Source: Eutreptiella sp. 'Long Island Sound 2002' (lineage: Eukaryota > Protista > Euglenida). From it: 64,000 bases of DNA. Shown here piece after piece: positions 2,418-36,139 of this stretch. The notes beneath the pieces are model-generated. The model saw only the letters and a list, made by a program, of their open reading frames with translations. It was not told the DNA's origin and searched no databases. The DNA lies in assembly GCA_964036045.1 (NCBI GenBank), contig OZ038378.1, positions 187,488,001-187,552,000 of the forward strand, in the 5' to 3' direction. The position numbers and the translations under genes are program-made. Within the stretch, counting starts at the first letter, position 1. Every line of letters begins with the position of its first letter.

Positions 2418-3351
2418 AGCATTTTCATGCATTTTGCCTTTTTGGGAGATCATCAATGGTGGCTTGGCACAGTGGTGTGTGGGCAAGGCCGCCCCAGGGG
2501 TGGGGGTTACAGGGGTAGCAGGGGGTAGTACACTGTGCCAAATCCCCAAAACGGCCATTTTCAGGCACAATGCCCTGCAGGGCTAGTGAAATGCACAATG
2601 GTTTGTACACAACCCAGAGCACCAGGGGTCTGGGTTGATGGTTGATGGTTGAGGGGTCAACCATCTGTCAAAACTTTGGGGGGGCGGGGGGGGGGGGGAG
2701 CTGGCCGCTGGAAAGGCTAACGGGGCGTGTCGGCGCTGTTTGGGGGTTTTTGCTACAATTGGCAATATTCTTTCCTATACAGACCAGACTACACTCCCAC
2801 AATGTTGGACAGCCTCATAACGCAATCCGGATTCTTTTCGTCTGGACAGCTCCAATGTACGTAGAAGAGGCCATCGCCAAAATCAGTGTACGCCAAAGGG
2901 CCAGTCCATATCCCCAACTGGAAAGGGGCCAATCCAAATCCAAATTCTTGATAGATACCACGAACCAATAGGAAGGGATGCAAAACAACACACACCAGTA
3001 CACTAGAAATTAGGGCAAAGCATGCAAACAACTTTTATAGATGCATAACAAGGCTCATTGTTACTGTTACGAGGCACTACTATGCAACTTGGGTATGGTC
3101 CTGTACAAACTTTGTGCACAGCGCGCACACAGCGTGCGCACAGTGCACAACACGCCCCCTCTGGGTAGTTGGGGGTGAGTCTGGAGAGGTCTAAGGGGAA
3201 AGTTTGGAGGGGGTTGGAAGGCCAGTCCCGGGAAGGGGGCCATCATGGGGGTGCCTGGTATATTCATGTTTAAGGGCATGCCGGCCGGCCAGTCAATCAT
3301 GGACATGCCCGCGCCTCTGCCCAGCCCCAGCAAAAGCAGCAAAAGCCTGAC

Positions 3352-4641
3352 CTGCAGTGGCGTTGCCGTGAGCCACAGAACGTTGTCGTCCCCGCGAATC
3401 AGGGGAATGACCGCCTCCATCCACTCGCGGTACTGACGATACGTCCAGTGCGTCTTGGAGCAGAAGTGCTGCGCCCCCGACACGATCACACGGTCGAACT
3501 GCGTGTGCCACAGCCACGGCCGCTCGTTGCGCCGCTGGTACCCCAGCGCCCGGTGCAGTTTGGCTGGTGCCAACTGCGCCTTCACGAGGTCCGCGAACGG
3601 CACCTGCCGCCGCTCCGCCAGCCACTTCCCAAAGGTCGCGAGGTACGGGTCCGACAAGTAGTCCACCTCCCAGGGCCCGATCACGAACCGGTGGCTGCGG
3701 TGGTCCCAGAACGCTGGGATCTGGGCCGGGGGTTCGCGCATGTGGTCCTTGAGCTGCTGCAGCATCGTCACGTAGAGGCTGCGCGCGTGGCTGTCGCCGA
3801 GGATCAGCAACTTCTTGGGCGCCCGCAGCACGGACGCGACGCCCGCGGCGTTGAGCAGGTCGACGTAGCTGCAGTCCACGCCCTGCCACGTCCAGTTCCC
3901 GGTCCAGACCCACCGCCCGGGCCCGTCCAGCGCCTCGCACACCGCCCGCGGCCGCGGCGCCGCGCGCGGGCACCGCAGCGCCAGGCCGCCCCCCCAAAGC
4001 GACACGTTGTCGAAGGGGAACCAGCGGTTGTCCCGGTCGTTGGCCCAGCGGTAGTCGGAGTACTGCAGCTCCCCCGTCGCCCGGTACGCGCCCGCGCTCC
4101 ACAGCGAGAACGGCGCGTCGTAGGAGCAGTTCCCGGTGTAGCGGAAGTCCGGGGCGTGGAACTCCGGCCCCATGATCCGGACCATAAGGGAGTCGGGGCC
4201 GTAGCCCTCGCGCACCGTCTGCACCGTCCGGCTGTCCAGGGAGAACCCGCCGCGCTCGCGGCAGCCCGCGACGCGCTGGACCTGCCAGGCCCCGGCGCAG
4301 GTGCCTTCGTCGTAGCAGAGCGTCACGCGGAATTGCGGATGCCCCGGCGCGGTCGCACACGCGGCGGGCGCGGCAGCCGCCGGAGGGCTCATGATGAACC
4401 ACAACCAGAGCCAGAGAGCGATCGAGAGCGGGACCCGGCCCACGCGCCAGCGGCGTGAACGGCGACTGGCGCCGCAGCAGTGCGACAGCAGGCGCGCAGT
4501 CGGGAGCACCGCCGGGGCACTCGGACACAGTAAGAGCGGCGGTGGGGCCTGGGGCGACGACCGGCGCCCAGCAACAGCCGTGCGAAGCCTCGGTGGCGCT
4601 GCAGCCTCGGGGGGACGGGGCGTGAGCCCGGTCGGCATCAT
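3352..4641 (-). CDS. Exon 1 of a type II membrane SGNH-hydrolase-family protein (NXPE/PC-esterase/TBL-like, putative glycan O-acetyltransferase or esterase); about 531 aa when joined to exon 2
   Basis: GC-rich open frame with a hydrophobic anchor (IALWLWLWFIM), an Ig-like segment (GPDSLMVRIMGPE...YTGNCSYDAPF) and the block I motif LLILGDSHARSLY. It ends at ATPLQ with a phase-0 donor CAG|GTCAGG at 3351. The start ATG at 4641 is inferred; 4392 is an alternative. Confidence 0.85.
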
Positions 4642-6998
4642 GCCTCGCGGTGCGGCGTGAAGGACCACGTCCGCGACGACGGGGCTGGTGTGCCTTTCAT
4701 GAGCGACGGCCGGCGTGGGGCATCGCAGCAAAGCGGATTCAAAGGGCCTGACCATGCGGGAATGGGGACAACCCGACGCTCGGGAAGTGAGACCGGAGGC
4801 ATGTCCTTGTGGCGGAAGGCCCGGTGGGTGACAGGGCAATGCTTGTGCAGTCGACCCCAGGCACGCCTTGGAGCGGGGGAAGGGGGAAAGGGGATCTGAA
4901 AACCCAAGATTCGTGTACCAAAAGAGCCCAAAAATCTGGCCTGGCCTAAACGCGAATTCTATCCCGAGGCCCTTTTGCCAACCCACCGGGGGGCTCAACG
5001 GTCGGTTCTGATGGACTGAATGGCCACACCATGGACAGTTCCAGCCATCAGGCCTTGATGTGTGTGTGTTCTCATCACATGTCCCTTCTTCGTTGGGATG
5101 ACCCACTAACAAAGTGCGCACCCCCCGGGAACGGAGGGGGGGATGAAGCCCCGGATACATACCCCACTGCCCCTTTGCGCAAGCACGCTGAAAGTCAAGA
5201 AAACGACAGTCAGACGGGCTCCCGTGCCTAGACAAGGCAGTGGATGCGTAAGGGGCGGTTAGCTACCGTATACCCCCGCGACACAGGCATACGGTCATTG
5301 CTCACCAGTTCCGAGTATTGCCTTGAGTTCGCCGACAACTCGGTTATGGAATGTTTCTTGGACTGGGTTAGGGCAAGGACCGGGAACTGAGGGGGGGGGG
5401 GGGGGGTAATGGCTCTGTAAGTGCGCCCGGTGGCGCCTCCGGTTCTTCGCACTGGTTTGCATTTTCAGGAGTGTCTACGTGGGGGGGAATGAAATCGAGG
5501 GGCTGCTCCTTAAGAATATTTCACAAGCAAAAACATGAAATTTACTCCAAAGCCCTGGAATTGGATGCCGATTTGCATACTCAAAAGTCGTTTTTGGCCT
5601 GGCATGGTGGTGGCAGAGTGGTGGCAAGGGGCAGCAGCAGTCCTGTGAGCACTCCCACTCTCACCTATTGAAAAATACTTTCCCTGGGGCAAACAACCTT
5701 TCCTTCACAAGGCCTGGGAACGCAGCACACCACTGATGGGTAACACCTGGTGATCTGGCACGTGTGGCCCTTGTGTTACATTTTCAACTGTTAAGGGAAC
5801 GACTGAAAGTGAAGCATGCCGGCGTGGGGGTGTCATTTGGGACCAACCTCAACCCACCCACCCACCCACCCACCCACGTCACAATAAGAAACGATCATCT
5901 CATATTCATCATTCATCATCATGGTGAACCCCCACAGAGCTCAATGGTCGGTACTGCTCCCTCATAAAATTTCGTGCCACACAGGGGGAGGGGGTAGGGC
6001 GGATAAGGGCTGCGACCAACCCACACACCCCTACGTCAGAGAAAGTGTCCACAGCAAAAACACAACATTTATTGAGGAGGCTGAAATTGGAAGCCTGCAA
6101 ACTGTTATTACCAGCTCCACCACACGCACAAGGCAACCAACCAGCATTCATGGAGCACATTTTGCCACCAACTGACATGAAAACATGCTTGCAGTTGCCT
6201 CCTCATCCCCTCGTGGATTACCGACTTACCAGAATATCTGCCCTCAAGCCCTGGTCACCACGTGGGCCATAGGCAGTGTTGTTGTCGTATCTGTGTGCAC
6301 ATTGCAAGCATACGAGCAGCACTCATCAGATACCAACCTCCTGTAAAACCGACACATTAGTGCAACAGGTTGGGGCAGCACGAAAAAATACGTGAAATTC
6401 TGGTGCCTCCAAATATTGCAATGTGTTGCCCAAAGACTTAAATTGCACATCCACCGTACAACAATGCAAAAGGCATGCAAAAATGGGCACATTTCCGACT
6501 AAGGCCAAGTTGTTGCACTGTGTGCACACTGCGTGCATACTGCGCACGCAGAGGCCGGGATACTCACCCGAGAATACGTGTCACCTGACAGGTAGCATAG
6601 CAAAGCAGCAAAGCCCACATGAGAACAACAGAACTGCCTTCAACTTGGTACTCCACTATCCCTATGAACAAACCACTCAGCCTTGTAAGGGACAACTATG
6701 TAGGGGCATGCAAGATGCACACATGTTCAAGTGGCAAGTGCCACACTCAGATATATCACCACGACGGTGGCCACACAATTGACAACAAACACCATCATCA
6801 TTTTCCTCCTCCTCAATGGTTGCCTCCTCCTGTGCCCACACAGACTCAAGCACACGAGACCAAGGTCCATAGGGCCGATACCTAGTCTGCCTGCGAATAC
6901 AATCCCGGCATAAGGTCACATATCCATACTATATTCCCAAGATTGTCCACAGCCACGGTTATCTTATAAACATGGCGTGCGCACTTGGGATTGAAAAG

Positions 6999-30200: not shown

Positions 30201-31890
30201 AGTTTTGTGTTGGTGCTGGCCGTCAGCCGCATGCCTGGTATTCACTCCGAACGTGGGGTAAGAACCTGGACAATGAGTCGGCGCTTGGATAGCAACCAAC
30301 GATACTCCCAGTTGCTGAACAGCGACGTTTTGTGGGCAATGACATACTCAAAGCCACGAGTTTGTATATTTTTTGGTTGTACGGTCTGTACTGTACGCGG
30401 TTCAAATGGCTGACACAGACTGCACAGACAGCACTGCACACTGAAGCATCCCATGAGCATGCCTTATAAGCGCAGCCCAGACCTCATTTCTTGCAGGGAC
30501 GCCAGTTGAGGGGCCCAACTCAGCCAATCCATTACACAACACGTGTGCACACATGATGCTAGCGTCCGTTTAAACGGGCGGAAATCCGTTAAAAGGGCGG
30601 AAACGGACACCCCCAAAATTTAAAGCGGGCGCAACTGGACACCACCCAAAGCCAAAACGGACGGAGACCCACAATGTACACGACACCGTTGTGGACCACC
30701 CAGGATGGAGGAGCTCGCAGTCAGTTAGCTGCCAACACACAATGTTTCACAAGTAATGGAAAAAGAATGCCAGGAGGCCATCGTCGCTACATTCGTTTTT
30801 GAGATGTCACAATGACCCGCTTGTTCCTTCATGCTATAAGCCAGCAAACGCACCGGAGAAGTTTCATATCCAACCTTCTGCGTTAATCTGTGACACGGAA
30901 AGTGACAGTTCCCTCGCCCCCCCTCCCCTTACTATGCAAGGGCGATTACTATGCAGGGGGGGGGGGGGGACTCCTCGGCATCAGTGGAGACATGGGCAGC
31001 TGAGGTCACCGAACCCCCGAACTCGCCTGACCTCGGGGATCAGATGCCGTAGCATGTCGGGGGCAGGGCGGACAAGACGCCACATCTCCCCGCATGGCTA
31101 ACACATTGGGGTGGGGAAAACAATAAATGTCCCGGGGGGGGGGGGGGCTTTTCCCAACCCCCTGTGTGACATTCCGTCTGGTTGTTGTTTCGTTACGGGG
31201 CCCTGGACAGTCACCCGTTCTTCCCTTCGCATGTTGCGTCGGGTTGCTGCTTTCTGTCGGCCGCTGTGGCCGGTGCTCCTGCTGGTGTCGTTTCCACGTT
31301 CGCGGAGCCCAACAAAATCCAATTCCCAGCATCTCAAGCCCTTGTGTGACACCACAAGCAAACAAAGGACTTTTACAAAGGCCCGGCCGAAGGAGCCCAT
31401 TTCTGCAAATCCCCCCCAAGAAATTGGGGGGGGGACTCCTAGGGCCCTCCCGGACAAAAGTTTTTCCCCCCCTCCTTGAGGCACAAAGCACGGCAGATGC
31501 GTAACCCCACTCCCCCGGGCGACACTCACCCAGTGACCCCGCCATTCCCCTCAGTTCGCCGGGCACCCCCAGTATGTCCAGGGGAAACTGTGGATCTTCC
31601 GCCAACTCCGCAGCGACTTCGGGTGTTTTGTGCCCAACTCTCTGTATGCCACACAACAGTGACGGTCCCCCGGGAAGGGGGTTAGGGGGGGGGGGGGGGC
31701 GGACATGGGGCAGGGCAGGGAGGGGGTGGGGGTATGGAGAGCTCGCCCTCGGACCCCTTCTACCAGTCAAAAGGGCTCACTCTAGCCTGTGGAAGTGGGA
31801 GGACGGGAGTCGCGGGCCATCTGCCTCATCCGGAAGTAGCGGCGGTTGTGGTGAACGTCTGAGCCTTCGACAATCCCATGGCAATTCCTC

Positions 31891-32022
31891 AACCACAACC
31901 ACAACCACAACCACAACCACAACCACAACCACAACCACAACCACAACCACAACCACAACCACAACCACAACCACAACCACAACCACAACCACAACCACAA
32001 CCACAACCACAACCATAACCAC
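31891..32022. repeat. (AACCAC)20 perfect hexamer array plus two further units
   Basis: Directly visible; it starts about 35 nt after the DUF616 stop codon and reads (GUGGUU)n on the mRNA strand. Confidence 0.97.
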
Positions 32023-32057
32023 CAACGTATTTCCAAGCGCCCGCGGTACTGAGCACC

Positions 32058-33257
32058 CTACGCCGCCCCCGTCGTATGCCACATCCCCTGCGGCACGTAG
32101 TGCCCCTTCGGAAGCTTCCGCTGGATCCGGAGCACGCGATACTGATACCGATGGGGCCACCACGTGAACAGCTCCCCGATGCTGAAGTAACTGAAGATGC
32201 CCGTCAGATTCCACGCGCCCACAACGCGCGGGAAGCTCAGCTGCTCCCGGGAATGAAAGTGCCAGTGAACCACCTCGTTCCACCAGGCGCACCCGAAGAG
32301 CTCCACGCAGCCTCTGTGGATGCCGCCGTGCGCGCGCACCAGGATGGCGGTGTCGACGGGCGTCGCCCAGATGCCCGCGGTGACGTCGGTCTCGTTCTGG
32401 TACGTGTGCCACATCCCGCGGATCGCGCTGCGGTTGTGTGCGAGCCGCGTGAGCTCCGTGCGGAACTCGTGCTGCGACGAGCGGAACACCGTCTGGAACA
32501 GCACGCCGATGCCGCCGAGGGTGTGGGCGGCGTAGTATTCGGCGCGGCCGCGCCCGGCGGGGGGCGCCTGCTTGGCACCGGCGACGCCAAGCGTGCCGCG
32601 GATCAGGTGCCAGGGGTCGACATCCAGCCGCACCTTCCCGTCGACGTACACCGAAAACACCGCGTTCGGGAAGAGGCGGTGCACGAGGATTTTGCTCACG
32701 AGCGAGCTCTTGTGTATGAGGTACGAGGCGTTGTACGGCAGCCGGTCCAGTCTCCAGAGCTCCCAAATTGTGACGTTGTAGGGCTGGAAGAGTACGGGCT
32801 TCACCAGGGACTCCTCGTCCAGCAATGCCACCCAGCACACCTCCTGCTTGTCGTACGCACTCCAGTTGTATGAGGGGTTGAACAGGTTGTCGTAGTAGCG
32901 GAAGATGACCGTCACGACGAAGATCTTGCACTCGGGTCGCCGCAGGTAGTGGTCGCGCACGTGGTCGTAGCTGGTGGGGCCGTGGAAGCCGCAGGGGATG
33001 TCCAGAGTCGTTGTGGCTGGCTCCATCGCAAGATACCGCGCCCTTGCCTCAGGGGTGATGGGGCAGCCATGGAACTCCGTGCTCTCTGCTGGGCAGGACC
33101 CGGGAGAGTACTGCAAGGCAGGGCATCGAGGGGCCCGGTCAGGACCTACCGCCCGGATTCGCGGAGTGTGCCGTCTACCCGCACTGGTCGGCGTGCAGCC
33201 GGAATAGAGCAGCAGCAGGACGGCGGCCCATGAGCGTAGCAAGGCACGCATTGGCAT
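32058..33257 (-). CDS. Intronless DUF616 (TOD1/MUCI70-like, putative glycosyltransferase) protein with signal peptide, 399 aa
   Basis: The family motifs appear in order: CKIFVVTVIF..YDNL..P, CWVALLDE, SKILVHRLFPNAVFSVYVDGK...DP, VDTAILVRAH, LFGCAWWNEV...SREQLSF. N-terminal signal MRALLRSWAAVLLLLYSG; high GC3. Confidence 0.92.
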   Translation of the reverse strand: MPMRALLRSWAAVLLLLYSGCTPTSAGRRHTPRIRAVGPDRAPRCPALQYSPGSCPAESTEFHGCPITPEARARYLAMEPATTTLDIPCGFHGPTSYDHVRDHYLRRPECKIFVVTVIFRYYDNLFNPSYNWSAYDKQEVCWVALLDEESLVKPVLFQPYNVTIWELWRLDRLPYNASYLIHKSSLVSKILVHRLFPNAVFSVYVDGKVRLDVDPWHLIRGTLGVAGAKQAPPAGRGRAEYYAAHTLGGIGVLFQTVFRSSQHEFRTELTRLAHNRSAIRGMWHTYQNETDVTAGIWATPVDTAILVRAHGGIHRGCVELFGCAWWNEVVHWHFHSREQLSFPRVVGAWNLTGIFSYFSIGELFTWWPHRYQYRVLRIQRKLPKGHYVPQGMWHTTGAA

Positions 33258-33312
33258 GGGTAGGCCCCATTTATGGAGGGTTGGGCACGAAATTGGCCAC
33301 CAGCATTCTGGG

Positions 33313-33332
33313 CGAAGAAAAACTCAGAAAGT
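33313..33332 (-). other. Genomic relic of the euglenid spliced leader upstream of the DUF616 gene
   Basis: Minus strand ACTTTCTGAGT-TTTTCTTCG compared with the Euglena SL ACTTTCTGAGTGTCTATTTTTTTTCG (recalled from memory): first 11 nt identical, the TTCG end kept, the middle deleted. It lies on the coding strand 55 nt before the ATG. Confidence 0.65.
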
Positions 33333-36139
33333 AGCGGTCAGTCATCGGCGATTGAAGGTCAGTGCTAGTAGGCCAACCCAATATCAATGAATGGATGGTT
33401 TGAAAAAGGGGGTTTGTGTGTGTGTCCAGGCAAATCAAACGGCTGGTCCAAATAATCTGATCTAGATACCTGTCCCATCCAATGGCAACGTTGGTGGACC
33501 GCCATAAGTGTCAATTACACAAGACATCGCCCTCCCACCAATAGGAGAATCGCTGCAATGCATGCACACTAGGCTCGCGTGGTGCAAGGGTTGCACTGCA
33601 CTCTATGTTCGGAATGTACGTACCTAGAAACGCCTACTGCTTGTACCTCCTGCCAAACTGCCCCGAATGACAGCCTTCCAGCAAAAGGTGGTGGTATATC
33701 TGACGGACGCCAAGGGCAGCACAATGGCTGTAGGTTACGGTGCCCTCAATGTTGGATGCTGCTCAGGAAAGCAGGAAAATGAGGGGGGAACAAGTGACGT
33801 CAAGGGGAGCGCCCAGAAGGGACTGGGAGTGCGGATGGGCTGCATGCCAGGGCATGGGGACTGAACCGAGGACCCGAAGGCATGGGGCATCCAGAAACAC
33901 GTCTCCCATGCATCGGCAATCAATTTTGGTTTCTCGCAGGTGCAACTTTCCCTTTGGAGAAAGGCCTATGATTCCTCTCTGGTATAAGGGGCATTTGCTT
34001 GGATAGGAAGGGGAATGCTGTGCCACTTTATGAAATTCAGTCGCAGCTTTTGACGCGCACATGTGAGGTTTTGAGTCGTTAGGTAACTTTAAGGCTAGTT
34101 GCTAGAAAGTCACCTCACGGGCACTGCACATGCGTTGTGCCCAAACTCTGCCTTGGACCTCATCACCATATCATTCCCATGCACCCCCTCTCCTGTGTCC
34201 AACGAATGCCGTTTCCATCGAACACTTCTGTCCACACCGTAATTTTTTGGGGCCTGATGAATTAGGTACCGGATTGAGGTACCGAATTAATTAAGTACCT
34301 AATGGCGTGCCCAACGAACTCTCCTGTTCGAACCGCATTTTTGGAGGACTTTATTGTTCGCTGGACAATCGCGGGAGAGGGGGTATTTTCCCAACACTAT
34401 TGGCCACGAATAACTCTGGCTGTAGCCACAGGACCATCAACCAACAGGGGTGCCTACTTTGGCATGGAGCGAAAAGGCAGCACGTAAGCAAATAAATGTC
34501 TCAACATCATTTAATCTATTTAAATCCTCCTGTCGTGATAATAACTTCATGGAACAACAGCAACAGCAAGCATGAGGAAAAGTATTTCTTCAACATACCA
34601 TTTCAAAATTGAACCATCCTTTTTGCATATCAATAGGCATATGAAAAAATGGCTTTTCGCAACTTGGCTTCCCAAATCTCAACGGCCAAAAAAAAAATGG
34701 TCAAAAATACCCATTTTCGGCCAGTTTTTGGCCATTTTGTTCTGAGAATTCAGGACAGAAAATGCTGTGCCAAGTATGTGCTTCCAAATGGCACCAATTT
34801 GGTTTGTTTTTTTTCCACGGTGGAAGGGACATCAAGGGAATGCAAATGGGCCATTGAGGAGGCATTTTCCAAGCCTTAATTCCATGCTATGGCCATTTTA
34901 GTGGTGAAAAACAGCCTTTTTTGGTTGGATTTTAACCTCAGAATTCAGGACGGTGACTCAGGGGTGGATATAGTGGGGGGGGGGGGGGGTCCCCCCCCAG
35001 CCCCCCTCCCCCCTGACAGCAATTACGATTAAGATTGCTCTGCCGCCCAGTGTGCACCAACCACATTTGGTCAACTCATATAGGTTCTTTGACCATACTT
35101 ACACAAAAACAGTGCCACTGTGAGGAGGGCCCATGACCCTGCCTGATTTCAGAAGCTAAGCCTCAGTGCACTAGTTTGGTACTAAGGTAGGAGACCACCA
35201 GGGTCATTTTTGCAAAATGGGTTTTGTTGACCAATCCTGGTATAAATTCTGCACACATTTGATATGAAATCATCAACCCTGTCCCTGAGGACATCTAACA
35301 CAGGGCAATGCACTGGACAGGTTTGTAGCATTTCTGAGTCCAGCACAATCATTTCTTCACACATTTGGCCAGAATTCTTTGCCATTCAGCAGGGTCCATG
35401 TCAGAACTGTCTGAGCTGTCTGTGCTGGAATTGGAACTTTTGCCATCCCGGCCGCTAGTAGACATACCTGCAAAGCAAAAAAAGAGCAATCGTAATCGTC
35501 GTTTCGTCGGCACACCCTCCTGGCCCAAGCCCCCCCCCCCCCCCCCGCCCGCCCCCCACCCCCACCTTGGTAATGTCGTCACTATTATATCCACCCCTGC
35601 GGTGACTGTTGCGCCAAACTGGTGCTTCCAAGAGCAGACAATAATATTTTGGCGTAAGGCAATGCCAACGGGTACACAAGGGACGTGAGGAGGAGGAATG
35701 AGGCATGAGGCAGGAGGACGTTATAAGATCACCTTTAGTTAAAAGTCCTTCTGACATAATAATAATTGTTCTACAACAACAACAACAACAACAAGTCCTC
35801 CTGTGGGCAAAGCCGTGGCCAAAAGAAATAATTTGAAATCAAGCCTACTCCAAACCTTTGCCAACGCATACAAATCAAAACATGTGCACCTAGTGCACTG
35901 TGCTGGCAGGCCACTTGCACAAAGGCTCACAGCCCCCTAAACAAAAAGCCATCTGATGTTGGCTACCCTCTGACAGCCATCAAGCATCGTCCAACTCCCT
36001 TTGGTTGCCATCAAGTGATCTATTTCAAAGTAGAAATGAAAAGAGGCATTCCCACCAGCACCTTGCATCACCACATTGCATAAATCACCAACAGTCCCAC
36101 CAGCACCCTGCATCACCACATTGCATAAACCACCAAAAT

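Follow-up and report, generated by a model that had tools for sequence, protein, structure and literature searches.

A worn spliced-leader relic in front of an intron-free TOD1/MUCI70 gene points to a probable orphan retrogene in a euglenid genome

We analysed a 64,000-nt stretch of the genome of Eutreptiella sp. 'Long Island Sound 2002' (contig OZ038378.1), here called the window, in which a single protein-coding gene and a short leader-like motif in front of it form the locus of interest. Listed in the direction of transcription, its features are:

33313 to 33332, minus strand: worn spliced-leader relic ACTTTCTGAGTTTTTCTTCG, 20 nt, read directly and aligned to the species' leader
33308 to 33312, minus strand: CCCAG directly after the relic, a candidate trans-splice acceptor
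33258 to 33312, minus strand: 55-nt 5' UTR leader between relic and start codon, unique in the genome
32058 to 33257, minus strand: intron-free coding sequence of 399 aa plus stop with a TOD1/MUCI70 glycosyltransferase-like domain, from the open reading frame and a Pfam match
31890 to 32024, minus strand: (GGTTGT)n microsatellite with roughly 22 repeat units in what is presumably the 3' UTR, beginning 36 nt beyond the stop codon

The open reading frame runs from 33257 to 32058 on the minus strand without internal stops, and its 399-aa product matches the Pfam family PF04765 (TOD1_MUCI70, formerly DUF616) with 104.3 bits against a gathering cut-off of 21.4 (E = 1e-29), the best stretch of the match covering only the first ~60% of the profile. 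The protein has an N-terminal hydrophobic segment, which would fit a membrane-anchored, glycosyltransferase-like protein. The coding sequence has a GC content of 65% (86% at third codon positions) and is colinear with the transcript-derived Euglena gracilis protein P0002, with 62-63% identity and no insertions, demonstrating that the reading frame is truly devoid of introns. For comparison, E. gracilis genes average 8 exons per 1,149-bp coding sequence (PMC11252322). The same PF04765 domain is carried by P0002 and by a further relative, P0003, and the nearest relatives in a metagenome scan are 23-26% identical to the euglenid proteins. Within this genome the window gene is the only ortholog of the expressed E. 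gracilis gene (EG_transcript_11423), no closer locus being present. A first-pass annotation of the window, made from the sequence, had described a 1.2-kb intronless, GC-rich DUF616 gene, and this description was borne out. It had also described the neighbouring genes as divided into exons of ~100 bp and elements bearing reverse transcriptase as plentiful; neither could be confirmed, as the 30 other reading frames and open frames of the window that were scanned gave no match to any Pfam family, reverse transcriptase included.

The spliced leader of the species was read from its SL-RNA genes, in which it is followed by a GT donor, and is the 26-nt sequence ACTTTCTGAGTGTCTATTTTTTTTCG, identical to the leader of E. 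gracilis. The SL-RNA unit is conserved, with leader and GT donor located ~530 nt from a 5S rRNA gene, and these genes confirm the earlier supposition that the leader begins with ACTTTCTGAGT. Leader-derived sequences are abundant, with 6,449 matches in the genome at two mismatches or fewer. The relic differs from the 26-nt leader by the loss of GTCTAT and by one T>C exchange, so that both leader ends are kept, and it contains an internal AG at 33324-33323 on the minus strand. It lies on the coding strand 5' of the TOD1/MUCI70 reading frame, 55 nt from the ATG, where the first-pass annotation had placed a leader-like motif; the 20-mer was located at 33332..33313 and CCCAG, which contains the sole AG between relic and start codon, at 33312..33308. 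Two upstream ATGs lie within the 55-nt leader, at 33306-33304 and 33270-33268, and neither of them is in frame with the coding sequence. The base preceding the relic (33333) is a T, the corresponding base being a C in 62 of the 67 other leader copies examined.

Neither the 20-mer nor the 400 nt around it occurs a second time in the 2.28-Gb genome, so the motif is not part of a common repeat, an objection raised at the outset. An origin as a repeat or as a variant leader was rejected, since a search with up to two mismatches returned 5 matches compared with 15 in controls. We also ruled out an assembly error, as DNA unitigs from three sequencing runs span 32030-34366 with 0 differences and the identity to another ENA assembly of this organism is 99.99%. 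An SL-RNA gene at this position was likewise rejected: behind the relic lie CCCAGAATG and unique sequence instead of a GT donor and the conserved SL-RNA intron. Its flanks are unlike those of eight SL-RNA units (L001-L008), the upstream flank differing from the conserved one, and the 55-nt leader showed no similarity to the SL-RNA intron or to sampled retroelement 5' ends. No 5S gene or other Rfam family was found between 30000 and 36000.

The significance of the match depends on how it is scored. Aligned end to end with the leader the relic scores 26; in 0.6 Mb of the genome's DNA none of 40 composition-preserving permuted leaders attained this value, and one reversed control did. This control rate translates into ~0.1 genes genome-wide that would have a chance match within 100 nt upstream on the sense strand. 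By local alignment, in contrast, the motif is not significant, as permuted leaders give ~1.3 equally good matches per 0.6 Mb and the reversed-leader control scores 27 inside the same 64-kb window. The 11-mer occurs once in the window with 0.8 matches expected when one mismatch is allowed, and genome-wide ACTTTCTGAGT followed by T or C, like ACTTTCTGAGTT, is found at or below chance level. An excess of ACTTTCTGAGT followed by a non-G base (1,025 versus 532) was considered as a sign of leader relics and rejected, its source being an LTR family that carries ACTTTCTGAGTA in pairs 6.1-6.3 kb apart. The gapped pattern ACTTTCTGAGTY-N0-10-TTCG has 31 genomic matches versus 4 in controls, nearly all of them plainly mutated leaders. 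What makes the relic significant is thus the end-to-end leader match together with its position, and not the 11-mer by itself. The original argument from the rarity of the 11-mer is revised accordingly: the 11-mer as such is unremarkable, while an end-to-end match in this place and on this strand is rare.

We searched the whole 2.28-Gb genome in six frames with the protein and its E. gracilis ortholog, and found neither an intron-containing parent of the kind that the first-pass annotation had envisaged nor a decayed one. Apart from the gene itself the search returned two paralogs, 30-34% identical and both intron-free, each a single open reading frame with nothing leader-like upstream. In one of them (C8) a T-rich tract followed by AG precedes the ATG, and a word search with this paralog for orthologs in other euglenid genomes found C8 only. 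Since both of these distant paralogs are single reading frames without a relic, the lack of introns is not diagnostic here, and the family may, judging from these sequences, simply be intron-free. At the 3' end, no poly(A) remnant was detected within 1.4 kb after the stop codon or following the (GGTTGT)n microsatellite, and as to a target-site duplication, no direct repeat brackets the unit and the flanks share no repeat, in agreement with the initial description of the locus. LTR-type capture was rejected, as the two flanks have no similarity to each other. The locus is present in three 2024 sequencing runs, in which its contigs extend colinearly into intergenic DNA and end at a microsatellite and at a high-copy repeat, indicating that they represent DNA and not RNA. 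The locus was absent from three tiny 2013 runs, and exact-protein look-ups returned only the second assembly of the same organism and no transcript contig encoding the protein.

Across the genome, 1,234 exact leaders are fused to non-intron sequence, compared with 0 in controls. Most of these fusions head retroelements, and some head intron-free host genes. Among 30 sampled exact fusions 21 head one retroelement family, with flanks diverging at the leader. The host genes headed by unique leader copies encode a C-type lectin, an S28 peptidase, a GT47 protein and a temptin/SOD/Kazal protein, and all are intron-free. A first-ATG reading frame of at least 170 aa begins within 60 nt behind nine of 27 unique leader copies, versus 1.7% of random positions; about two thirds of unique copies have no reading frame directly behind them. 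Host domains identified by Pfam were found at 4 of 58 distinct sampled leader sites, and more sites have unannotated reading frames. One copy (L059) has an internal deletion of the same kind as the relic and heads a full-length Peptidase_S28 reading frame, and both this copy and another (L029) show stacked, 5'-truncated leader relics. Reverse transcription of leader-carrying RNAs is thus demonstrably rampant in this genome, host genes included.

Based on these findings we consider it likely, with a probability of roughly 0.7, that the TOD1/MUCI70 gene at 32058-33257 on the minus strand is an orphan retrogene that still bears a relic of the leader. Its mature mRNA, trans-spliced to the SL, would have been converted into cDNA, with the machinery probably supplied by the leader-headed retroelements filling this genome, and this cDNA, starting with the leader, would have become a fixed part of the chromosome. 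The copy with introns would since have been lost, or the cDNA may have taken its place at the same locus, and such a replacement would explain why parent, poly(A) and target-site duplication are all missing. The leader would then have decayed through the 6-nt deletion, the T>C exchange and a C>T exchange at the preceding base, and any poly(A) tail or target-site duplication would have eroded. The proposal that the gene is a reverse-transcribed mRNA, already made in the first-pass annotation, is hence supported in part: leader match, place and strand as well as genome-wide retroposition argue for it, and the parent, poly(A) and target-site duplication that would strengthen it were not found. 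Taken by itself the window gene is a rather weak case, weaker than others in this genome, of a process that occurs here frequently.

One alternative is chance resemblance. It assumes an ancestrally intron-free gene of an intron-free family, in which the T/C-rich stretch before CCCAG is the ordinary polypyrimidine tract of a trans-splice acceptor that happens to contain the first 11 bases of the leader. Such a gene would resemble the two paralogs, which are intron-free without relics and of which C8 also combines a T-rich tract with an AG; the non-significant local alignment score, the value of 27 for the reversed leader in the same window and the frequency of ACTTTCTGAGTT at or below chance genome-wide are all compatible with it, as are the T in place of the usual C before the motif and the joint absence of poly(A), target-site duplication and parent. 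In addition, chance should account for four of the 31 members of the pattern class, and only two obvious chance members were otherwise seen. However, an end-to-end match of this quality occurred in 0 of 40 permuted leaders (0.6 Mb), and each chance member has a probability of only ~7e-4 of sitting within 100 nt upstream of a gene start in sense orientation, an estimate that assumes ~33,000 genes, the published E. gracilis count (PMC11252322). Real leader copies, on the other hand, often precede long reading frames (9 of 27 unique copies, within 60 nt). Moreover, ACTTTCTGAGT is not pure pyrimidine, so that by our own calculation a T/C-rich context raises its chance frequency only ~2.4-fold, which also argues against chance. 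On balance we regard a chance resemblance as unlikely.

Still less probable, in our view decidedly so, is that the motif derives from the leader and has nothing to do with the origin of the gene. It would then be the decayed remainder of an SL-RNA pseudogene, a leader copy standing by itself or the start of a leader-headed retroelement that happens to lie beside an independent gene. The raw material for such a coincidence exists, as leader-derived sequences are abundant (6,449 at two mismatches or fewer) and about two thirds of unique copies lack a reading frame directly behind them; from the leader counts we estimate that random adjacency is expected for ~5 genes genome-wide. The locus itself speaks against it: the sequence after the relic is unique and unlike the SL-RNA intron or any sampled retroelement 5' end, the sequence before it is unlike the conserved upstream flank of SL-RNA genes, neither a 5S gene nor any other Rfam family was found in the vicinity, and strand and spacing fit a 5' UTR. 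Furthermore, scaling up the host-gene retrocopies at 4 of 58 sampled sites gives far more cases than are expected from random adjacency.

If the gene is an orphan retrogene, it would still be functional, as suggested by its intact reading frame, its strong codon bias and the expression of the E. gracilis gene to which it is the sole ortholog. A functional gene must be transcribed and, as usual in euglenids, trans-spliced again, and we infer that this renewed trans-splicing would use either the relic's internal AG or the CCCAG that follows the relic. A further-reaching and rather doubtful idea, raised in part by the first-pass annotation, is that the U-run of the relic together with CCCAG (or the relic's own AG) forms the present acceptor, and that retroposed euglenid mRNAs each bring their own acceptor and are expressible anywhere within a transcribed region. 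If true, this would account for the survival of both ends of the leader in the worn relic and for the abundance here of host genes and retroelements headed by a leader.

Relict spliced leaders are an accepted mark of RNA-mediated gene duplication in dinoflagellates, in which retrogenes with such relics were reportedly described by Slamovits and Keeling in 2008 as 'mRNA recycling'. Dinoflagellate relict-SL retrogenes are also treated by Song et al. 2017 (PMC5585692) and in Open Biol 2025 (PMC12014239). Like those genes, the window gene is intron-free and has a DNA-encoded copy of the organism's own leader just upstream on the coding strand, and the surrounding genome contains many leader copies, stacked 5'-truncated relics included. 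The lineage differs, however, being Euglenida with a 26-nt leader; the window gene has just one relic, worn and lacking 6 internal nt, and no surviving parent was found. Moreover, the dinoflagellate relics were first seen in cDNAs, the euglenid relic in genomic DNA. A second parallel is provided by animal orphan retrogenes, retrocopies whose parental gene was lost (PMC3548309). Like them, the window gene is intact, conserved and free of introns, bears signs of having arisen from RNA and has no parent left in its genome; the sign here is a spliced-leader relic and not poly(A), a target-site duplication or a comparison with intron-bearing orthologs. The closest comparison within the genome are the leader-headed non-LTR retroelements, which are likewise copies made from RNA by reverse transcription, begin with the same leader and have upstream flanks that diverge exactly there. 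They are, however, multi-copy and selfish with near-perfect leaders, while the window gene is single-copy and encodes a conserved cellular protein behind a decayed leader.

In the open literature that we searched, we came across no account of relict-SL retrogenes in euglenids. The locus would add one conserved, single-copy cellular gene to the relict-SL retrogenes, and it is a hard case, in which the worn relic is detectable by end-to-end matching and position and not by k-mers or local alignment. If the reading as an orphan retrogene is true, an unrelated trans-splicing lineage would show that trans-splicing combined with active retroelements repeatedly opens a route to gene birth and intron loss.

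The classical Euglena leader ACTTTCTGAGTGTCTATTTTTTTTCG has 6,449 matches with at most two mismatches in the 2.28-Gb genome, whereas the reversed control has none. Of the first ten leader copies, eight are SL-RNA genes: a conserved flank precedes the leader, and a GT donor with a conserved intron comes after it. Both units scanned with Rfam have a 5S rRNA gene at a distance of about 530 nt (L002:2032-2150 and L071:2040-2158; L numbers denote sampled leader copies). Linkage of an SL-RNA gene to a 5S rRNA gene is the arrangement described for E. gracilis. As the SL-RNA genes encode the classical leader, the species' leader starts with ACTTTCTGAGT, which bears out the leader start assumed in the first-pass annotation. 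SL-RNA units L001-L008 are scattered at 25-120 kb spacing across the first 460 kb of contig C1 (G000:C1:29492-458353).

The base preceding the leader (-1) is C in 8/8 SL-RNA genes, 29/30 exact copies and 25/29 mutated copies. Overall, C precedes ACTTTCTGAG in 62 of 67 copies (L028-L087 and all SL-RNA genes), which suggests that the leader as copied by reverse transcription extends upstream of the textbook 26-mer by at least one base. At position -2 retrocopies mostly have T, the SL-RNA genes A.

The DUF616 gene had been described as 1.2 kb long, intronless and GC-rich with a leader motif 55 nt upstream, and this description holds: the protein matches Pfam PF04765 (TOD1/MUCI70, formerly DUF616; E=1e-29), and GC is 65% and GC3 86%. 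The relic corresponds to the species' leader minus GTCTAT, plus one T>C exchange, with both leader ends kept.

Features of the TOD1/MUCI70 locus (window positions)
33332-33313, minus strand: worn SL relic ACTTTCTGAGTTTTTCTTCG, read from the window sequence
33312-33308, minus strand: CCCAG directly 3' of the relic, read from the window sequence
Between relic and ATG, minus strand: 55-nt leader (5' UTR), read from the window sequence
33306-33304 and 33270-33268, minus strand: two upstream ATGs in the 55-nt leader, neither in frame with the main ORF
33257 (ATG) to 32058 (end), minus strand: 399-codon TOD1/MUCI70 ORF, from ORF and Pfam match
31890-32024, gene's strand: (GGTTGT)n microsatellite, about 22 units, 36 nt past the TOD1/MUCI70 stop codon

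An assembly artefact is excluded, since window positions 32030-34366 show no difference from DNA unitigs of three public runs and across 7.2 kb the identity to another assembly of this organism is 99.99%. The 20-mer relic and the surrounding 400 nt occur once in the genome; the motif is thus not part of a common repeat. At 34190, DNA unitig depth climbs from about 10-35 into the thousands, where a dispersed high-copy repeat containing long runs of G or C begins (34190-34400). Sequence rich in C/G runs is found 3' of the gene as well (30950-31750), without significant similarity between the two flanks, and no repeat common to both was found. Neighbouring genes split into exons and RT-bearing elements, both reported earlier for the window, were not confirmed: none of 30 other ORFs or open frames scanned matches any Pfam family. 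A 722-codon open frame without Pfam match (3067-5235, minus strand; GC3 0.79) has no leader-like sequence scoring at least 20 upstream.

Candidate trans-splice acceptors, predicted from the sequence, are the relic's U-run plus CCCAG, the latter holding the sole AG between relic and ATG, or the relic's own AG (33324-33323). Either would leave both upstream ATGs in the predicted mRNA, that at 33306-33304 opening an 11-codon uORF and that at 33270-33268 a frame overlapping the main start.

Among E. gracilis transcript proteins the best match is P0002 (EG_transcript_11423), 63% identical to the window protein; its best locus in the 2.28-Gb genome is the window gene itself, which as the only ortholog is presumably functional. 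Judged by both results, the organism is probably not E. gracilis strain Z. The ORF aligns colinearly with P0002 and with another euglenid protein known from transcripts, P0003; as lineage-specific insertions are absent, it hides no in-frame intron. E. gracilis genes average 8 exons per 1,149-bp CDS (PMC11252322), which makes a 1.2-kb single exon unusual. Two distant paralogs (30-34% identity; contigs C8 and C15) are likewise single ORFs, so that in the TOD1/MUCI70 family intron absence is not usable as independent evidence; nothing leader-like lies upstream of them (scores 16 and 18 versus 26 for the window relic). The intron-containing parent that had been envisaged was not found in the genome, intact or decayed. 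Poly(A), searched within 1.4 kb 3' of the stop codon, and a target-site duplication around the gene are absent, in agreement with the first-pass annotation.

The relic's 11-mer, previously regarded as special, is not significant alone, as 0.8 matches are expected in the window with one mismatch allowed. For ACTTTCTGAGT plus a non-G base the genome has 1,025 matches and the controls 532, and the count with T or C is at or below chance. Leader relics were ruled out as source of this excess; it comes from an LTR family carrying ACTTTCTGAGTA, which inflates k-mer counts for the first 11 leader bases. This sequence occurs genome-wide in same-strand pairs 6.1-6.3 kb apart (e.g. G000:C1:21239578 and 21245718), a spacing that marks them as the paired LTRs of an abundant LTR retrotransposon. 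In gapped local alignment the relic scores 26; per 0.6 Mb, permuted leaders yield about 1.3 alignments this good, and another stretch of the window aligns to the reversed leader with a score of 27. When end-to-end alignment is required, as predicted for a full-length cDNA, 26 is reached by 0/40 permuted leaders and once by the reversed control (0.6 Mb). At the resulting chance rate of about 4e-8 per strand position, about 0.1 genes in the whole genome should carry a match this good in sense orientation no more than 100 nt upstream. As independent evidence, 31 genomic sites, nearly all obvious point-mutated leaders, fit the pattern ACTTTCTGAGTY-N0-10-TTCG, against 4 in controls.

Exact leaders followed by a non-G base, hence not by the intron, number 1,234 in the genome and 0 in controls. 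One repeat family is headed by 21 of 30 sampled leaders, its upstream flanks diverging exactly at the leader, and several smaller families behave likewise, demonstrating large-scale copying of leader-carrying RNAs back into the genome. In 9/27 unique copies an ORF of 170 aa or more, counted from its first ATG, follows the leader within 60 nt, versus 1.7% of random window positions.

Unique leader copies heading intron-free host-type genes
L028: C-type lectin
L059 (G000:C1:3446833-3446851 and the next 20 nt): full-length Peptidase_S28
L069: GT47 exostosin-like glycosyltransferase
L074: temptin/Cu-Zn-SOD/Kazal protein

The L059 leader has an internal deletion, as does the window relic, and is followed by a second relic beginning just past its internal AG, a pattern that would be expected from re-trans-splicing of a retrocopy and a second retroposition. 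At L029/L010 (G000:C1:1042749-1042774 and downstream) and L046, three leaders (full, A>G and 5'-truncated) are stacked ahead of a 247-aa ORF that belongs to a small repeat family without Pfam match.

The best fit, with a probability of about 0.7, is that the window gene's own trans-spliced mRNA was retroposed with the leader at its 5' end, the parent gene then having been lost or replaced in place. A coincidence is unlikely: one of the few genome-wide chance matches would have to fall, in sense orientation, into the 100 nt ahead of a conserved gene, a placement with a probability of about 7e-4 per match, although perhaps 25 times likelier if such matches arise more readily in pyrimidine-rich acceptor regions. 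The non-significant 11-mer and local-alignment tests fit coincidence, and the base before the relic, T instead of the usual C, counts against a relic, whereas the end-to-end permutations and the excess of the pattern class over controls argue for one. It is less probable still that the relic is a leader-derived fragment of other origin, unrelated to the gene; random adjacency is expected at roughly 5 genes genome-wide, but the sequence 3' of the relic is unique and resembles neither the intron of the SL-RNA genes nor the 5' end of any sampled retroelement, which disfavours this origin.

No report of relict-leader retrogenes in euglenids was found in the literature searched. Among known systems, the dinoflagellate retrogene with relict leader comes closest (PMC5585692, PMC12014239); it belongs to another lineage and carries another leader, the euglenid case being known from DNA alone. 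The logic is the same, and the window locus is therefore a rather worn case of the kind known from dinoflagellates.
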